Part shown: piece after piece, positions 7,689 through 51,863 of the stretch | Layout: each line of letters begins with the position of its first letter | How positions within the stretch are numbered: position 1 is the stretch's first letter | Source: Setoptus koraiensis | Lineage: Eukaryota; Animalia; Arthropoda | Direction: 5' to 3' | NCBI GenBank assembly: GCA_048013815.1 | Contig: CM106585.1 | Span: 20,460,001-20,524,000, forward strand | Length of the DNA stretch: 64,000 bases | Notes under the pieces: model-generated | Told to the model about the DNA's origin: nothing | The model's input: the letters and a program-made list of their open reading frames with translations, nothing else | Database searches by the model: none | Translations under genes and position numbers: made by a program

Positions 7689-10600
7689 TGTAAGGATTGA
7701 TCCGATAATTTGTCCTTTGGATAGGCCAGTCGGTAGTACAATTGTTATAACTGTAGAGACAATCTCGATCTTTATCTGCGGAGCCAATGGTAGTAGCAGT
7801 AGTAGTAGTATGATGTAATGTGTGTCCCGTTATCTTTATTACAATCTATATTCATATTTAAGTCTCTTGCCAATGGCCAAAAATGATATAACCTTACAAT
7901 TATGTGTTCTGACAATTCGCTGGAAATGCACTTGTTGTGCGCCATGAACGAGAGACCGAGTGCTGAGTCTTGCTGAGACTTGGATAATAAAGGTCTATTT
8001 ACTACCCAGAGTTTATATAACAAAGAGGGGCTAACATGTTAGTGCAACATGTGATATTTGTTGTGACGTTAGATGGACTAAAATCATTAGCCGAAAATAG
8101 TGATACAGTCATTCGGGTTCGCGACTGCCCCACGAATGTCTAGACACGAGACAGGCCGAGATAAGCAACAAGCCTAATTACCACCTCCACTATTTGTACA
8201 GTCAATTTGTTATGTTCAATGTTCAATGTGACACACAAACACACATACAGTTAATGCTTGAAACTTATTCTAATCTGCTTATTTATTCCACTTGTCTATC
8301 ATTACTGTCACTAATCATTATTATAATTATCCTAAAAACCGAACCACACTAAATGGCCTGTCTGAAATCAATCAATGGCGCTCGTTTGGATACACGACTG
8401 TGTCTCTTGCCTGATATGGTCAAACAACCGGACACTCTCGAACACACACACACACACACTGGTCAATCATCGACTAACTGATACAACATGAATGACTTAT
8501 TTGATATATGCTATCATTATTACCATTGAAATTGGTATACATTAACAACAAATTCCATTGACCAAAACGAATGAATGTAAAACACATACAAACACATAAC
8601 GCAAACCAACAGGAGGAGTGGGAGGAAAACGAGCGGCGAACCAATTATCACCATTACAGCTAGAGGTGAGTCAACACACATCTGATATTAGACATAATCC
8701 AATGGCAACCTCATAAATACCATCCTATCTATCTGGTTGTTAGACTATCTGCCGCTGTTATTGCCTTTCAGGTTAATCCTGATTATTTGCCCTCGCAAGC
8801 TCTCTTCTCTGGCACTGCTTCAACTCATCTGGCAATTGTGAGATCAGTTGACTGCCTTTGGATAGTTGATTGGCGAGTCTGTCGGCAGATAGTTTGTCTG
8901 TTTGCTGTTAAGCAAGCCTTCGTGGGAAAGTGAACGAACACATTTAAATAAGATTGTGAATGTCGCATTCGGATAGTTGATACTGTAAGGTATCGATTTT
9001 TCACCATTTATTCACGCAATAGCTACTATAGCTACAACTACGACAGCTCAGTTGCAAATTGGCAGCAACAAAAAAAAACAACAACAACCGAGCCTTCTCT
9101 TTGTTGTTGTTTTTATTGTTGTTACTGCTTTGAATGAATAATCTCGTGACCTCTATTTAGCTTGCTTTTAGACGCCTGTTGTTATTTAGACGGTTATCAA
9201 TACGGTAGAAAATTGATTGAAAACACCGACAATAGACAGGGGCACAACATAAGTTAGCTTTCTGGCTTCCAACGATGATTGCTCTATCAAGCCGTCTTGT
9301 CTTGTTGACGTTCACTATCCACTTTCTCGATTGCGACAAAACACACGACCAAGGAGCGTCTTGTCGGCGGAAGGGGCTTGCCTTACATTCATTTCTATTC
9401 TAGAGGCCCTAACCAATCTGACCCAATTACTATTGTTATGAATGAGCTTGTCCTGTGTGACACAATGGAAAAAATATTCTGTTGCTTTATTATGGCGCTT
9501 TTATTCAATTCAATTTATGTGTTTATGAATGCTATAGCAGCAGTCCAGTCTATTAAGTTTTATTGCATGTATTCGAAAGGCGGTTTGCTAACAATTCTGT
9601 TTCTATCTCTCTAATCATGCATACAGACTAACAACATTTGTCCGGATTCGAATGGAGTTGCCATCAGTGGCTCTCAAGCGAGTGGCGGAAATGGCTCGCT
9701 GAGGCGCCAGGTAAATCAACACACCAATACAGGCAACACGCTTCTAGGACCCATAAGGGTAACTGGTGAGGTTTGTTTTAGCATTAGCTTCCAGGCCAAA
9801 ACAAACTCAATGGACGTGCATGTTGTCGAATGCCGCAATTTGGCGCCTGTTGACAAGAAGCGCCAAAGATCCAATCCGTAAGTTGTCAGAGAAAATGTTT
9901 GAATCGTGTAGATTGATAGATATAACCGCAACACTGGTCTGACGTTTACCATTTGAACTCTCTAACATCTTTTCAAATAACACAGCTACATAAAGCTTTA
10001 CCTGTTGCCGGATAGAAGCAAGAGCGGGAAGCGAAAATCAGCCATCAAAAAGGCCGATTTGAATCCCAAGTTCGATGAAACATTCACATTCTCTCAATTG
10101 GGCCTACGCGATCTAGAGCAACGAACACTGTGGCTCAGTGTCTGGCACAAGGATAGATTGGGCAGAAATGATTTCTTGGGCGAGATAATCTTGCCTTTGG
10201 AATCGGCTACACAGACTCTGTTGCAAACAAGCCGCGAGCACAAATGGTACAAACTGCAAGAAAGGGTAAGCAAATAAGCGAGTTAATTAATTATTATGTA
10301 ATTTACTTTACTCATAATCTCTTTCTCACAGCAACGTCTAACTCTGTCGTTCTAACGTCCTTATTATAATTATTTTCATTTTTGTGTATGATTTTTAGTT
10401 CGAAATGAGCAACGTTAAACGCAACTTAAACCAGGCGTCGCAATTCAATGGTGAACTGTTTGTTGCTCTCAAGTTTGTTCCACTGAACCCCGATTGTCGC
10501 ATCGACAGAGATAGTGATGGAGACCTGCATATCATCGTGAAAGAGGCGCACAACATCCGAGCCTTCAACAGACAGATCGGCCTACCTAATCCATATTGTA

Positions 10601-43390: not shown

Positions 43391-44011
43391 CTACATTTCT
43401 TCATAGGTGATTTTGTGATGACAAGTCTTACATTCTTTTTCGTAAACATCGTCATCTGGAATGTAGGTAGGCTCACCAAACTCATGTTCGTGGGCGGAGG
43501 TAGATTTCTTATATAAGCTTGATCGTACTTCCATCCTGAGGCTTTTCATCTTTTTGTCATAGTTTTTCTGTTTAGCAGCAGAGCGCCTTTCTTCTCGTTT
43601 TTCTAACTCTTCCTCTAGGTTATCTTCGGAGCCATGAACCATTAGAGCCCTCTCCTCAATTTGTAACTTCAAGTACAACTTCATATCACCTCGCTGTGCG
43701 TATGGATTTTTTTTGAGTATATATCTGAGGGGTGGCTCTCTTAGGTCAAGATCGCAGTCTTTGAGAAGATATTTTGTTTTGGCTTCAGTTCGAGTTATTA
43801 ATTGGTGAACTTCTTGAGAGTCTCGACAATCATCACAGACATTCATACCAAAATGTGAATACAAATATGATCTAAGAAATCCAATGTGACAATCTTCACA
43901 ATCCTTGAGGCTGTTTTCATCGAGTGGGGGGAAAGAGCTTGATGGTAGCTTCATTGGTTGGTTGGTTATGGATGATGATCCAACAGGACCACCCGAGCTC
44001 GACGATGCCAT
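43391..44011 (-). CDS. XPA: DNA repair protein XPA, single exon, N-terminally shortened
   Basis: C4 zinc finger CEDC...VCDDC, LITRTEAK.KYLLKDCDL..REPPL, KKNP...GDMKLYLKLQIEERA, LRMEVRSSLYKK, HEHEFG, C-terminal CKTC...YEEM. Confidence 0.95.
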   Translation of the reverse strand: MASSSSGGPVGSSSITNQPMKLPSSSFPPLDENSLKDCEDCHIGFLRSYLYSHFGMNVCDDCRDSQEVHQLITRTEAKTKYLLKDCDLDLREPPLRYILKKNPYAQRGDMKLYLKLQIEERALMVHGSEDNLEEELEKREERRSAAKQKNYDKKMKSLRMEVRSSLYKKSTSAHEHEFGEPTYIPDDDVYEKECKTCHHKITYEEM

Positions 44012-44414: not shown

Positions 44415-45691
44415 ATGACGAAAAGAGTTTCAGAAAATGAGCCGGATTTATCTATGATATTACACAAGAAATCTAAAAACTCCCCACTTGTACCCCAACC
44501 TGGAGAACAAGAATGTAAAACAATATCAGAATCAACGGTAATCATTTCGATTCTTTTTGAATAATAGATCTCAACACGGCTTATCAGCAATTGTAATCAT
44601 TTTCACCTGACATTTTCTCTTATTCATTTTCTTATTTTCTCATTGATTTAGGCCCCACCACAACAAAAAATTTCGAGCCTGAAAAGTCCAATCATGTTAC
44701 TGACAGGACACGATGGTGAAATATTTTCGACTAAATTCCATCCGAACGGGAAAACCCTAGCAAGTGCAGGAAGCGACAGATCAATCTGTAAGTAGTCCAG
44801 AAGTTAGCTCAGCGAATCAATCAAATCCAATCTATTATATAATAATCTTAATTCTATTCGACATGTCATCCAGATTTATGGAATGTACACGACAAGTGTG
44901 AAAACTATGCTATCTTGAAGGCTGTCCACTCAAACACAATATTAGACCTTGCTTATTCCAGTGATGGAGATAAGATATTTTCTTGCTCTGCTGATAAAAC
45001 GATCATTGTATGGGACACAGAAACAGGTGGAAGAATCAGAAAACTAAAGGCTCATTCGTCCATAGTGAATGCAATTGGAACTACAAATTCTGATTGTAAC
45101 CTCTTGACTTCGGTGGGAGACGATCGTCAGATCAATATATGGGACATAAGAAAAAGAAACTATGTTCACAGTTTCAAAGATACCTACCAATTGACCTCAG
45201 TGACGTTCAATAAGAATGTCGATCAAGTGATATCTGGCGGAATCGAAAATATAATTAAAGTCTGGGATATCAGAAAGAACGAACTGGCCTATCCGATGCC
45301 GTGTCACTCTGATACAGTAACAGGTCTCAGTTTGAGCCCAGATGGAAGATCCATAGTGTCAAACTCCATCGATAATACTATTCGCATATGGGACGTGAGG
45401 CCACTCGCTCCAAGAGGAAGGTTGCTGGCAACTTTGACCGGACATCAGCACAATTTCGAAAAGAATCTACTCAGGTGTAGTTGGTCGCCCGACGGGAATT
45501 TTGTCACTGGAGGTTCGGCCGACAGAATGGTGTATATTTGGAACGTCGCCAAGAGGCAAGTCGTATATAGATTACCGGGACATAGAGGGAGCGTCAACGA
45601 AGTGGTATTTCACCCTTTTGAGCCTATTGTGCTATCCTGTAGTAGCGACAAACAATTATACATGGGCGAGCTAGTACTGTCGAACGACTGA
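44415..45691 (+). CDS. SNRNP40: U5 snRNP 40 kDa WD40 protein, 3 exons
   Basis: Exons 44415-44537, 44652-44787 and 44874-45691. SSLKSPIMLLTGHDGEIF..KFHPNG..LASAG.DR, seven WD repeats, HNFEKNLLRCSWSPDG, YRLPGH.GSVNEV.FHP.EPIVLS.SSDKQLYMGE. Confidence 0.95.
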
Positions 45692-45751: not shown

Positions 45752-46155
45752 GGGACTCAAGAAAATGGGTGTCAAATGTGACATGGTACAGTAGATCTCT
45801 TTCGATAAAGGTCGGGTCACTGCCAGTGGAAATTAAGTTCCAGATGATACAAAGTCCTTATCATGCTGACATGACGTTTTTTTTTATTTTTACAGTGGAC
45901 CAGGTTTCCATTGGCGTACCATTTCTACACTCGAACTTCTCTGAAACAAGGCTAATGTAAAGTAAATTGTAAGATGATTATATTTTAGGAAATATTAAAT
46001 CACCAAAGTTACGGTCAATCTCTACAAGTGGCCCAGCTCAATATGATTGCTCCTATCAACTGTCAGCGATGCTATGCGCGCTGAAATCATTTCGCCACCT
46101 GCCGAGCGATTTTTGTCTAACTTGAGTTTGTCATCGAGCGTCTGCGTATTGGGCA
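45752..46155. repeat. 404-bp direct repeat, copy 1
   Basis: Identical to 47732-48135 (offset 1980) except at 46034/48014 and 46090/48070. Confidence 0.95.
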
Positions 46156-47490
46156 ATTTTAAACGTTACGGCCCAATCGTAAGGGAACAACTAGACAATG
46201 ATCTTGTTTTTCTTCATTTATTCGATCCCAGTGACATCGAATCTCTCTTCAGACAGGAGGGGCATTTCTTGAGACTGAAGGGTCATATCCTCATCGAAGA
46301 TCACACAGGGCTTTGCTGAAATACCGTCTTGACAGGCCAGAGAAATATAATGATGGAGGTTTATTTCCTGAAAACGGTGCAAATTGGTATAAACAAAGAA
46401 AAAGATTTAACCATTTGCTGATGGCCAAGTCTAACGTTTCACGCTATGCCGACATCATAGAATCCATAACAACAAAATTCATTCCTTATCTAGTAAGCAA
46501 TAGAGATAGCAAAAGTTATGGGGTTACCTATTTACAAAAGTATTTATATGATTGGTCTATGGAGAATTCTCTTAAGATCATACTGAATACTCATGATGAT
46601 CATTTTGATAGCAAGCACTTGTCTAATATCAGGAAATTGATACAAGCCAATCATGATACGTTGGAATCTATAGCAAAAACTGAGACATCTCACAATGAAT
46701 TATGGAAAAATGCCCCAGCTAAATGCCCCATCAGAAATTATTAAGATCACAAGAAACCGTATATGATTTTGTCTTTAATCAAATCAATAGAACCAGGGCA
46801 AATAGTGAGGGCAAGTCAACCAAAGAATCACTCTTATCTCAGTTTTTGACGTTGGACGGCGCCGATGATAAAGATATCACAACAATGACCTTAGATCTTA
46901 TTCTTGCTGGTTTACACACCACCTCATTCTCCGTCGCTTTCGTTCTCTACCATTTGGCTCTCAATCCAGCAATACAAGGAGAGCTTAGGAAAGAGATTCT
47001 TCTCCATTTGCGACCCAACAAGTCTAAATTCACGAAGGAGTCATTTGACAAAATGACATTCCTTCACGATTGTGTAAAAGAAAGTATGCGATTGCAACCT
47101 CTGTCAGTTGGAACTGGCCGATATTTAGATTATGAGGCTACGGTCATACGTAATTACAGTATTAAGAAAAATACCAGGGTAATTACTCATAATCAAATAG
47201 CATGCCTGGACGAAAATACTTTCGAAGAGGCCTCACTATATAAGCCGTATCGATGGCAATCTTATCGATCCGGGCCACCGCAGAATAAACCTAATCCATT
47301 CGCATTGTTGCCGTTTGGTTACGGCGCAAGGATGTGCATAGGTCGAAGATTCGCCGAGCTCCAAATATGTCCTCTTGTTGGCCACACTATAAGGGATTTT
47401 AGGGTGGAGTGTCAAGATATAGTAAAAACAAAGACAATGTTGATAAATTTCCCAGAAAAGCCGATAACTATGAAATTTATCGATATATAG
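46156..47490 (+). pseudogene. dib: Mitochondrial-clan cytochrome P450, CYP302A1/disembodied-like; 5'-truncated with two frameshifts
   Basis: KRYGPIVRE...LFRQEG / SYPHRRSHRALLKYRLDRPEKYNDGGLFPENGANW (dib-like signature), I-helix AGLHTTS, ExxR (ESMR), heme motif PFGYGARMCIGRRFAE. Frame breaks at about 46260-46282 (20-nt excess) and about 46710-46730. The native N-terminus is not recognisable. Confidence 0.75.
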
Positions 47491-47625
47491 CTTCTTTATT
47501 CAGAGCATGGAGGATGTGATACATATATATGCGAAGGAAGTCGATCAGGTGAAAAAGATATAACTTAATACATGCATGACGTGAATGCAGCAAACTCTTG
47601 ATATAAATGAAATCTACTATTATAG

Positions 47626-47631
47626 AATAAA
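47626..47631 (+). terminator. Polyadenylation signal AATAAA downstream of the P450
   Basis: AATAAA followed by T/GT-rich genomic sequence with no templated poly(A). Confidence 0.5.
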
Positions 47632-47731
47632 CTTTTGATAACTTTGTATAAGTTGTGTATATTTGTCATAATCAACTCTTTGGTTGCTTACAAGTTTTTT
47701 TGTGCTGAAACCAGTCGATCTTTTGACATTC

Positions 47732-48135
47732 GGGACTCAAGAAAATGGGTGTCAAATGTGACATGGTACAGTAGATCTCTTTCGATAAAGGTCGGGTCAC
47801 TGCCAGTGGAAATTAAGTTCCAGATGATACAAAGTCCTTATCATGCTGACATGACGTTTTTTTTTATTTTTACAGTGGACCAGGTTTCCATTGGCGTACC
47901 ATTTCTACACTCGAACTTCTCTGAAACAAGGCTAATGTAAAGTAAATTGTAAGATGATTATATTTTAGGAAATATTAAATCACCAAAGTTACGGTCAATC
48001 TCTACAAGTGGCCAAGCTCAATATGATTGCTCCTATCAACTGTCAGCGATGCTATGCGCGCTGAAATCACTTCGCCACCTGCCGAGCGATTTTTGTCTAA
48101 CTTGAGTTTGTCATCGAGCGTCTGCGTATTGGGCA
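47732..48135. repeat. 404-bp direct repeat, copy 2
   Basis: 402/404 identical to 45752-46155. Confidence 0.95.
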
Positions 48136-48931
48136 TGCCTCATAGCGAGCGCCCAAACAAAACTCTTTAGCGGGGCGGGAGCGACCATCGGTAAGATGCG
48201 TCCTTCTGTGCCCCTTTATTGTCATCATTGTCCACGCCTCTTGGGCATTGTCCAGCCTAGGCAGGTTGCAGCAATTTGTTTATTGCAAGCGCAGCGTTAT
48301 GTCTGTTGACAAGCGATCGGCTGACATTGTTGCAAGTTGATCTCAAGGTTATGTAAATCTCGAAAGGAATCAAAGCGCCTCAAGCTGATAATCATGATTG
48401 TACCTAATGTGCGCGGTTCGGTCGGTTCGGTCGGTTGGTGTCGGCTGTGGCCAAGTGGGCGGTAATTGGCGCGTATGTTTGTCCTTGTGCCAGTTATCTC
48501 GTGCGCGAAAACATGTTTGGTTTTGTATTGGGCTGGTTCTCTGCGAAGATTGTTTTACATTCTGTATGCTATAGAATGCCAGAATCTGCCAGTACATGTG
48601 ATGATTTGATACGAGGGAGCGCGATGTGTGTGTGCACGCTGTATTATTCGAGCCGCACAACAATACAGCGTGAAACAAGACAGTCGGTATTCCATGCAGT
48701 TTGTGCATTTTAGGGCACACAAGTGTGACTAACAAAGTGAATTGCTTTAGCATTTGAGGCGCCCAAGAGCACAAAATTGCATCGCAGGCCATGCATACAG
48801 GCGCTATTCCTGCACAACCTGTGACTGCTTGCAATACTGTTTACTGCAACTACCACTACCACTGCAACTTCCACTACCATACCATACTACCAGAGCTATA
48901 TAATGGTATATAAATGATCATCAGATATTGA

Positions 48932-48933
<2 letters not shown>

Positions 48934-48971
<38 letters not shown>

Positions 48972-49218
48972 TGTGTGTGTGTTGTGTTGATGTGTGAATC
49001 TGGTGGCAGAAACGAGAACTGCGAAAGGCCTTCAGAACATTTGTGTGTATCGTGAGCGATTTTATACTCTACCGCTGTACATACTGGTATGCTGGTGTGT
49101 GTGCCACCGCTGTCACACACTGTCTGTTTGTGTGTGTGTCTGTGTGTTGCACACAATGTCTGTGTGCGTGCGTGTGTATGTGTGTGCGTGAGTGTGTGCG
49201 TGTGTGTGTGTGTGTGTG
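48934..49218. repeat. Compound (TG)n microsatellite region
   Basis: Perfect and interrupted TG runs at about 48934-48982 and 49120-49218. Confidence 0.85.
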
Positions 49219-49384
49219 CGTTGAAACGAACGAACGAACGAACGAACGATGTTGTGTGCAAGCCTGTGCGCACTTTGCGGGCGCTCATTGGACATCGAAG
49301 TCGAATTGAGAATCTCATCCATATTCCGGGTCGTCACAAGAGTTCTTCCAACAATCTCGTAGCGCTTTCGACCGCGCCGCGGCG

Positions 49385-49581: not shown

Positions 49582-49872
49582 TGGCTGACGACAAAGGACG
49601 AATGCTGGCGGACCAGCGCTCACAATTGAGCAAACAGCACCAGACAGGCTCGTTTCTCCTCTCATTTTAGAACGAGAGAGTTATCAGATATGATTTTTAT
49701 TAGACATAGTCACATAGATAGCCGACAGATACACACTAGACACAGAGGCTCGCCATCGCACCTCTTTTACTTAATTTTAACCACATTATTAAAACTCTCT
49801 CATTACACAACACTATACATACGCTAAAAGGCGCTAAAACAGAGCAAGAGACAGCAAGAGAGAAGGAGAGAG

Positions 49873-49875
<3 letters not shown>

Positions 49876-49914
<39 letters not shown>
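49876..49914. repeat. (GA)n microsatellite upstream of BCL9
   Basis: Uninterrupted GA run. Confidence 0.95.
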
Positions 49915-49916
<2 letters not shown>

Positions 49917-50393
49917 TGCAAGCGTTCAAGGAAGAAGAAGAAGCAAGAAGATATTTATCTTGGAAAAAGCGCTATCTTTGTCATCATTTCTCACTGAAGA
50001 TTATCTGTCTCTCTCGCTCTTTTCACTCACTATGTCGGGCTATCTGTCTGTGTATGTATCTGCATCTATCGCTATCGTCATTATGTATGTTTATTGACAC
50101 TATTTATTCGTCTAGACACTTGCACATACATACAACAACGATAGGGAATCAAGTTGGTCTCAAATCTCCAATAATAATTATAATTACATCCCATTGTACT
50201 GTTAAGCCATTAAGCCAGCAACGACATTATCGAGCTTTAATTAGCGCACAACAACAGCAACAACAATAATAATACTAATAATAACAACAACGGCGGCAGC
50301 CAGCAGCAACACAATAAAACTACCCCCCCTCCCCTACTATACAAGCCAAATCAGACAATAAGATCAAAAAGTCATCATTAGCTACAGTTTCAA

Positions 50394-51863
50394 ATGACAC
50401 AAACCAGTGTTTATGTGTTCAGCTCACAAACTGCTAATGAGGCTGCCAATGCTGTTCACGCTGGCCAATATGAATCCATTATACAGTATCATGTCAATAA
50501 ATATATGCAACATCAACAACAGCAGGGCCCCATGACACAACATCCACTACCTCCAACCCAACAACAACAAAAACAACAAAATCATTATGCTACTCAACCA
50601 CCACGGCCCAATTTATCACAGGGCCAACAACAAAGTCATCCGCAATTACTTGGACAGTCACCTCATTCTCAAATGCAAATTCAACCCAATGGCCCTCCTC
50701 CACCACAACCACCACTAATGCAACACCCTCCTCCTGTCAATTATCCACAGGGCCCACCACAAAATCAACCACCACATGGCCAATGGATCCTCAATCATCA
50801 TGGGGTCCCAATAGATCATCCACAATCACCTCACAATCAGCATATTAAATATGATAATCAACCAACTATGAACAATCAGTCTGTCAATAATCATGTTACT
50901 GGACCACCCTTACAACAAACGAGATCCTTACCACATAATTTTGATCAATCAGCCAATCTTCTACCACAAGTTAAAAAAGAAACAAAACTCAATAATAACG
51001 GACAACCCCCACCACAATTTCAACAGCAACAACCTCCAATCTCCTACCAAAATCAAAACATTCAACCAAGTCAATGGATGAATCACCCTGGCCCATTAGA
51101 GCATCCGCAATCACCTCATCAACAACATATGAACCAAATAAAATATGACCAACAACCAAATTTAAACAATCAAATTCCGCCAAATCATGTAGGACCTCAG
51201 ATTAGACCAAATCTGCAGCAATCTATTTTTGATCCTAATGCAGCACAACAGAAGAAAGATCAAAAGCTCAACAGTGTACCGCCCCCTCAACAGATGCAAC
51301 AACATCCCCCTCCTGTTCCTTACCAGAATGTACCTCAAAATTCTCAACAACAATGGATGAATCATCCTGGAGTTTTAGAGCATCCTCAATCCCCTCATCC
51401 TCCAACTATGAATCACATCAAATATGAACCTAGCATGAACCAGATGCCACCAAGTCATATAGTACCTCCTCCTACTAGACCAAATTTACAACAGTCTCAG
51501 CAGAATTTCGAATCTAACCTCACACCTCAACAAAAGAAGGAACGCGATTCAAAACTAACTAAATTAGGTCATTTAGCTAATGTAATTTCGATGAATTCAT
51601 CCGCTCAATGTGGTCCCATACAAACAAATATGACTCAGCATCAGATGTCACAACCTCCTCAGCACCAGTTACAAACGCAACATCAAATTATGACTCAGCC
51701 TCAACATATGCAACAAGCACCAACGCAACCACCCCTTAGTATGAAGCAAGACCACCAAGGGTTGGATCCACTATCATCAATGGCTGCAATGAGCGAATCC
51801 CCCAATATGTACGGACATACTATTCACCACCATCCTCATAGGCAACAGCATCCTACTAATTGA
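50394..51863 (+). CDS. lgs: BCL9/legless homolog (Wnt/beta-catenin co-activator), 489 aa, single coding exon
   Basis: HD1 VYVFSSQTANEAANAVHAGQYESIIQYH (aa 6-33); HD2-like LTPQQKKERDSKLTKLGHLANVI (aa 376-398); DPLSSMAAMS motif near the C-terminus; Q/P/H-rich. Confidence 0.8.
   Translation: MTQTSVYVFSSQTANEAANAVHAGQYESIIQYHVNKYMQHQQQQGPMTQHPLPPTQQQQKQQNHYATQPPRPNLSQGQQQSHPQLLGQSPHSQMQIQPNGPPPPQPPLMQHPPPVNYPQGPPQNQPPHGQWILNHHGVPIDHPQSPHNQHIKYDNQPTMNNQSVNNHVTGPPLQQTRSLPHNFDQSANLLPQVKKETKLNNNGQPPPQFQQQQPPISYQNQNIQPSQWMNHPGPLEHPQSPHQQHMNQIKYDQQPNLNNQIPPNHVGPQIRPNLQQSIFDPNAAQQKKDQKLNSVPPPQQMQQHPPPVPYQNVPQNSQQQWMNHPGVLEHPQSPHPPTMNHIKYEPSMNQMPPSHIVPPPTRPNLQQSQQNFESNLTPQQKKERDSKLTKLGHLANVISMNSSAQCGPIQTNMTQHQMSQPPQHQLQTQHQIMTQPQHMQQAPTQPPLSMKQDHQGLDPLSSMAAMSESPNMYGHTIHHHPHRQQHPTN

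Follow-up and report, generated by a model that had tools for sequence, protein, structure and literature searches.

The scars left by templated insertions have mostly been documented in tumours and in human copy-number disorders. Li et al. 2020 (PMC7025897) used the term "cycles" for those templated insertions in which the copied string rejoins the host chromosome and part of the latter is replicated a second time, and ascribed such structures to replication-based template switching. Here, we compare with these structures a locus in a 64,000-nucleotide stretch of scaffold C1 of the phytoptid mite Setoptus koraiensis (the window), in which a damaged P450 gene lies between two long direct repeats. 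The P450 belongs to CYP302A1 (disembodied, dib), the mitochondrial C22-hydroxylase of ecdysteroids. The feature is an ordinary pseudogene that came from a known type of rearrangement, and the gene is intact elsewhere in the genome.

The original prediction described a 404-bp direct repeat with 99.5% identity around the P450, and this layout was recovered with exact coordinates (see the table). The two repeat copies, A1 and A2, lie at an offset of 1980 in the window and differ at 2 of 404 positions (0.5%; positions 46034 and 46090 only), and their similarity breaks off at once beyond either end. Between them are 1576 bp in which a P450 can be read in three frames, and the P450 homology sets in at 46154/46156, i.e., at the exact end of A1, as had been predicted. 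On their outer sides, A1 and A2 pass into native flanks. On the upstream side this is SNRNP40, an assignment that held up, with the U5 snRNP 40 kDa protein (U5-40K) as the top full-length PDB matches (E 5e-101, about 1e-100) and with WD40 matches in Pfam. The SNRNP40 stop codon is separated from the start of A1 by 60 bp, and the sole poly(A)-signal candidates behind the gene, AGTAAA at 45961 and ATTAAA at 45994, are both situated in A1, which probably holds the SNRNP40 3' UTR along with these candidates. The duplication therefore probably left the SNRNP40 3' end, as well as the DNA downstream, intact. Beyond A2, the DNA is rich in GC and contains microsatellites; the first large plus-strand open reading frame (ORF) after it is found at 50394.

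Features of the SNRNP40-P450 locus, in window positions
Feature	Position	Strand	Remarks
SNRNP40 last coding exon (U5 snRNP 40 kDa WD40 protein)	44915..45691	+	258-aa open frame, WD40 Pfam matches
A1, left landing-site copy	45752..46155	.	404 bp; repeat comparison and genome search
Left microhomology CA	46154..46155	.	common to the end of A and the parent just before codon 68
CYP302A1 pseudogene body	46156..47490	+	parent codons 68-513 plus stop; 41 substitutions
Frameshift 1	46284..46285	+	1-bp deletion relative to parent, AA to A
Frameshift 2	46727..46728	+	4-bp deletion after 46727 relative to parent, adjacent T to C
Copied parent 3' flank	47491..47731	+	241 bp, 10 substitutions (4.1%)
Convergent ankyrin and MYND gene, last codons and stop	47672..47731	-	same C-terminal peptide in window ORF 47672..47800
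A2, right landing-site copy	47732..48135	.	runs on into native downstream intergenic DNA
Right microhomology GGGACT	47732..47737	.	common to the start of A and the parent flank; imperfect extension, 11/13 bases

When all 48.76 Mb of the genome, in two scaffolds, were searched at the DNA level, the 404-bp repeat was found at two sites, both at the SNRNP40 locus. Because it is confined to this locus, we regard the repeat as landing-site DNA and not as a mobile element. A reading of the repeats as LTRs or parts of a transposon was rejected on the same grounds, i.e., two copies only, both at one locus, and no terminal inverted repeats at the repeat-insert-repeat structure. In the 64-kb window, no further structure of this type was found, and there was no Rfam match to a structured RNA between positions 44000 and 50500. 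Among the metagenome contigs scanned, no exact match to the end of the repeat was detected.

The disruption of disembodied had led to the suggestion that, if no intact copy existed elsewhere, this lineage would need an altered moulting-hormone pathway, while an intact paralogue would make the window copy only a decayed duplicate. The latter proved to be the case. A six-frame genome search with the C-terminal 255 codons returned a 94% match on the other scaffold, C2, within a 538-codon stop-free frame. At the DNA level, window positions 46154-47747 align to C2:21619088-21620687 (minus strand) with 96.4% identity over 1600 positions, and the whole-genome DNA search gave no other close copies of the insert. 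The C2 gene at 21.62 Mb encodes a complete protein of 513 residues, is uninterrupted and intronless, and has a full-length match to Pfam PF00067; no long flanking repeats are present at this locus. Thus, the C2 gene, and not the window copy, has a complete ORF with presequence and hinge.

Best hits and trees agreed with the predicted CYP302A1/disembodied-type identity. The top named matches to the C2 protein were without exception CYP302A1 (38-44% identity in mites, 32-35% in insects) and ranked above CYP49, CYP301, CYP314, and CYP12. A P450 phylogeny, which had been suggested as a check, was made as two quick maximum-likelihood trees, the second without the rows OWN_L004, L006, L007, L010, L012, Platus_302b, and lgn_P0002; the C2 protein was placed inside the CYP302A1 clade (SH-aLRT 99), as sister to Aceria tosichella and unnamed eriophyoid-like sequences, a position that suits an eriophyoid that branched off early. 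The protein keeps the ExxR, PxRW, and heme-Cys motifs, and the last of these, FGYGARMCIGRR, is present in both the window copy and the C2 parent. The AGLHTTS and PYRW residues of the window copy had been considered non-canonical. However, AGLHTT and PYRW both occur in the intact C2 gene, AGLHTT recurs in the closest orthologues from eriophyoids, and mites differ among themselves at the second residue of PxRW (E, D, K, C, or Y). Motif decay was therefore rejected, and these residues are traits of the lineage. Judged by its sequence, the C2 CYP302A1 is the putative working dib gene of the lineage and a predicted C22-hydroxylase.

With an intact 513-codon CYP302A1 on C2, loss of disembodied was rejected. 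In the quick trees, a gene at C1:6.48 Mb grouped with CYP314A1 (shade), and in the second of them a near-identical pair of genes on C2 grouped with CYP315A1 (shadow; SH-aLRT 88, with CYP315A1 as best named hits). The genome accordingly has all three mitochondrial Halloween genes, shadow in two copies. This removes a false alarm, i.e., disembodied is not lost and nothing indicates a changed moulting-hormone pathway. The eLife paper on the Aculops genome contains no text about CYP302 or ecdysteroids.

Relative to its parent, the window copy begins at codon 68 and lacks codons 1-67 (the presequence and the PGP hinge) as well as the promoter, in line with the missing mitochondrial targeting peptide and N terminus of the original prediction; the 600 bp that precede this part in the parent are found on C2 only. 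In the other direction, homology to C2 extends 258 bp past the stop codon, and the last 77 bp of the copied C2 stretch are the coding end of a convergent gene with Ank and zf-MYND Pfam matches (end of the neighbour's ORF at L016:1577, homology to L016:1501). The comparison thus points to a copied unit that is a stretch of the C2 locus reaching into the coding sequence of the neighbour. Two larger reading-frame pieces of the copy still match PF00067 (E 3.9e-6 and 9.1e-49). The two frameshifts that had been claimed were seen against the intact C2 paralogue as losses of 1 and 4 bp, and disembodied is indeed broken in the window, by truncation and by these frameshifts. The 1-bp frameshift at 46284/46285 could be a consensus error; by its sequence the copy would be a pseudogene on truncation alone, frameshifts aside. 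In annotation, the open frame of 255 codons at 46723-47490 is not to be entered as a P450 gene.

The structure has two new junctions only, and a three-way comparison of both loci and the repeat revealed microhomology of 2 bp at the left and 6 bp at the right junction. The probability of at least 6 bp of microhomology by chance is about 2e-4, and the boundaries of the duplication coincide exactly with the ends of the insert. We consider it probable that the 1576 bp of C2 dib DNA were pasted behind SNRNP40 on C1 in one copy-and-paste cycle of templated insertion with a single template, a type of template switching also known as FoSTeS/MMBIR; in this reading, we infer that the mechanism was replicative and that the template was DNA and not RNA. 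A nascent strand copying the region downstream of SNRNP40 would have departed from its template at window position 46155 and re-primed on C2 through the 2-bp microhomology. It would then have copied C2 from dib codon 68, past the stop codon and on into the convergent neighbour at its 3' end, and returned to C1 by the 6-bp microhomology, 404 bp behind the point of departure. Because re-entry would lie 404 bp behind the exit, these 404 bp would have been copied twice, giving A1 and A2. Without a promoter, a start codon, and a mitochondrial presequence, the copy would have been dead on arrival, and the two frameshifts and the damaging substitutions would have been gained later, with the C2 gene left untouched. 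Of two histories put forward earlier, the insertion of a genomic P450 fragment with an unusually long target duplication is the correct one, while replacement of the 5' end of a resident gene by a copy of nearby DNA fails, the P450 being the newcomer. The insertion is a fixed or a segregating germline event and could be polymorphic.

The insert differs from its C2 source at 51 of 1576 positions (3.2%); 41 of these substitutions fall in coding sequence and 10 in the flank. The coding substitutions are spread nearly evenly over the three codon positions (10:15:16). With dS of 0.064 and dN of 0.023, dN/dS between copy and parent is 0.36, a value that rejects omega of 1 (P=0.002), 0.2 (P=0.03), and 0.1 (P=3e-5), and that is compatible with neutral evolution in one lineage and constraint in the other (expected value about 0.55, P=0.14). 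At the sites with informative outgroups, the derived residue was in the copy in 12 cases and in the parent in 5, and the copy carries Y261H, at a position where Tyr is invariant across 14 orthologues. Because of the dN/dS pattern, this comparison indicates that most of the 3.2% divergence would have accrued after the copy was dead.

The divergence of the insert is significantly higher than that of the two repeat copies (51/1576 vs 2/404; Fisher P about 0.001). An extra assumption is needed here, because one event predicts equal divergence of both pairs. The likeliest is gene conversion between the repeat copies, which are 1.6 kb apart, as this would keep them near-identical. Alternatively, the insert may have come from some other donor than today's C2 allele, since the assembly omits about 6% unplaced sequence; a two-step history may also account for the gap. 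A recent insertion from a divergent functional allele was disfavoured, given the rejection of the two lower omega values.

A second case was found at shadow. The two CYP315A1 copies on C2 share exactly 1600 bp with 99.8% identity, in inverted orientation. The copy at C2:23.2 Mb is bracketed by two direct repeats (1092 and 1093 bp) that are 99.6% identical, with 2-bp microhomology at each junction, and no direct repeats were found at the CYP315A1 source, 3.5 Mb away. The copied stretch starts 1 bp upstream of the ATG, ends 72 bp beyond the stop codon, and, as in the case of dib, enters a convergent neighbour, which here is an mTERF-like gene. This young second copy is intact and differs from its source by one amino acid; at this locus, the divergence of the repeats (0.37%) and that of the insert (0.19%) are in agreement. 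Of the three mitochondrial Halloween genes, two were verified to carry this scar. In a 200-kb sample of the genome, no repeat-insert-repeat structure was detected, only an older split duplicate. Whether template switching with landing-site duplications of 0.4-1.1 kb is a main route of dispersed gene duplication in this streamlined eriophyoid genome is doubtful, and we put this forward only as a tentative suggestion. If true, the lineage may have an unusual toolkit for replication restart or lesion bypass, and flanking duplicates may evolve in concert, which would account for the young-looking 404-bp repeats.

The extents of the two copies also bear on the nature of the template. A 5'-truncated dib transcript could have been used in break repair or reverse transcription, which would make the window copy an atypical retrocopy. 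The copy is 3'-complete, 5'-truncated, and promoterless, the shadow copy likewise begins and ends close to its coding sequence, and the parent is intronless, so that retained introns cannot speak for DNA. Furthermore, the convergent genes are very close to each other, and their 3' UTRs may overlap the coding sequence of the neighbour. Against this, the copy ends inside the coding sequence of the neighbour, a poly(A) tract is missing at the 3' junction (47731), and the 100 bases that precede this junction contain no poly(A)-signal hexamer. The hexamer nearest to it is AATAAA at 47626; the C2 parent has AATAAG there, so that this motif arose in the copy and is not the signal of the gene. In addition, the target duplication is 404 bp instead of 5-20 bp, and there is microhomology to the genomic source at both ends. 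We therefore regard an RNA template as improbable. A retrocopy had also been disfavoured in the original prediction, and for a classical retrocopy this holds.

Other DNA-based routes would give the same structure as template switching. Both a 404-nt staggered break that captured a dib fragment and was then filled in, and a single crossover, within the repeat unit, with a chimeric extrachromosomal circle of that unit and a dib fragment, yield a repeat-insert-repeat structure with two microhomology junctions. However, each takes more steps, i.e., two distant nicks plus a free fragment in the former and circle formation plus recombination in the latter. The donor is intact, which fits copying over cutting, and the duplications vary from about 0.4 to 1.1 kb, which fits a polymerase with variable return points. 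Such routes thus seem unlikely to have produced the locus, and one cycle of template switching is preferred.

The assembly was made with Flye from PacBio CLR reads of >100,000 pooled wild mites, with about 1.1% heterozygosity and short-read polishing. Noisy CLR reads from a wild pool, a 1-bp frameshift that might be a consensus error, and scaffold gaps elsewhere (2000 N in the 200-kb sample) could be taken to mean that the repeat-insert-repeat structure or the frameshifts are assembly or polishing artefacts, absent from the animals. The window, however, contains zero N, and the junction partners share 2 and 6 bases only, so that an assembler needs spanning reads to join them. The insert is a distinct locus, with 51 differences and a 4-bp deletion relative to C2, the repeat copies can be told apart at two positions, and the same clean architecture is seen at the CYP315A1 locus. 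Collapsed overlaps cannot account for the junctions, the 4-bp deletion, the 51 substitutions, or the truncation, and we consider it very unlikely that the structure or the frameshifts are absent from the animals.

As a templated-insertion cycle, the window locus is a clean, base-resolved germline example. Together, the dib and shadow cases illustrate the dispersed copies of a compact genome, some of them whole and potentially useful and others dead on arrival. The parts worth attention are that the scar recurs in this genome and that the duplicates on its flanks apparently evolve in concert.

Compared with CYP302A1 proper, the window copy retains 96% DNA identity but is without codons 1-67 and the promoter and has two frameshifts. 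With processed, LINE-mediated retropseudogenes it has in common that it is promoterless, 5'-truncated, 3'-complete, and intron-free and that it resides on another chromosome than its parent, although the lack of introns is uninformative when the parent is itself intronless; it is unlike them in having no poly(A) tail, in its 404-bp duplication, and in entering the coding sequence of a neighbour. The position of a gene fragment between direct repeats is also reminiscent of Pack-MULE or Helitron capture, or of an LTR-bracketed element. Here, in contrast, the repeat is found at a single locus, there are no terminal inverted repeats and no element-like ends, and the source and junctions are fully accounted for without any element. 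The cycles of templated insertion (PMC7025897) were defined in somatic cancer genomes and mostly involve larger segments, whereas the insertion described here is a 1.6-kb germline event, with flanking duplicates that look younger than the insert. Nevertheless, the locus resembles these cycles in that the donor on the other chromosome is intact, the host segment (404 bp) is re-replicated, and there are two breakpoint junctions with short microhomology.

The two "contigs" that carry these loci, C1 and C2, are gapped scaffolds, since a 200-kb sample of C1 (2000001-2200000, loci L022-L041) contains 2000 N; the 64-kb window contains none. Within the window, an XPA-type DNA repair gene lies upstream of SNRNP40, and long microsatellites occur within a GC-richer region (47.5% GC) that lies between A2, the downstream landing-site duplicate, and the next large ORF.

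Coordinates of the features described
Feature	Position	Strand or orientation	Remarks
XPA-type gene	window 43391-44011	-	206 codons, intronless; Pfam XPA_N + XPA_C
(TG)n and (GA)n microsatellites	window 48918-49240 and 49831-49924		long
Next large ORF past A2	window 50394-51863	+	Q/P-rich
Duplicated segment	C1:2160309-2161330		1022 bp; within C1:2152884-2161330, loci L037-L038
Inverted repeat	L021:4715-5004 and 8777-9066 (C2:19.69 Mb)		290 bp; arms 97.6% identical
shadow (CYP315A1), source	L021:5998-7597 = C2:19689997-19691596		
shadow (CYP315A1), second copy with bracketing repeats	L020:4639-8419 = C2:23215638-23219418	inverted relative to source	

On C1, the 1022-bp segment has a second copy 5-7 kb upstream (~95% identity), which is interrupted by 2.2 kb of extra DNA. 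This pair is not a scar in which a copied insert lies between direct duplicates of its landing site; it reflects an earlier duplication, one copy of which carries an indel. A further stretch resembling CYP302A1, at C2:18684683-18684782 (L019), shows 72-75% similarity to the I-helix region over 100-150 bp; it belongs to a different P450 or else is an old gene fragment.

The 290-bp inverted repeat encloses the source copy of shadow together with the convergent gene next to it, which is mTERF-like. One arm of the repeat overlaps the beginning of that convergent gene, and the repeat is possibly a further pasted fragment. The second shadow copy (1.6 kb) is intact and 99.8% identical to the source. 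Two direct repeats flank it, one 1092 bp and the other 1093 bp in length, and they are 99.6% identical to each other; both junctions show 2 bp of microhomology. Its scar is the same as that at the CYP302A1 fragment in the window, but here it is young and the gene is whole and open.
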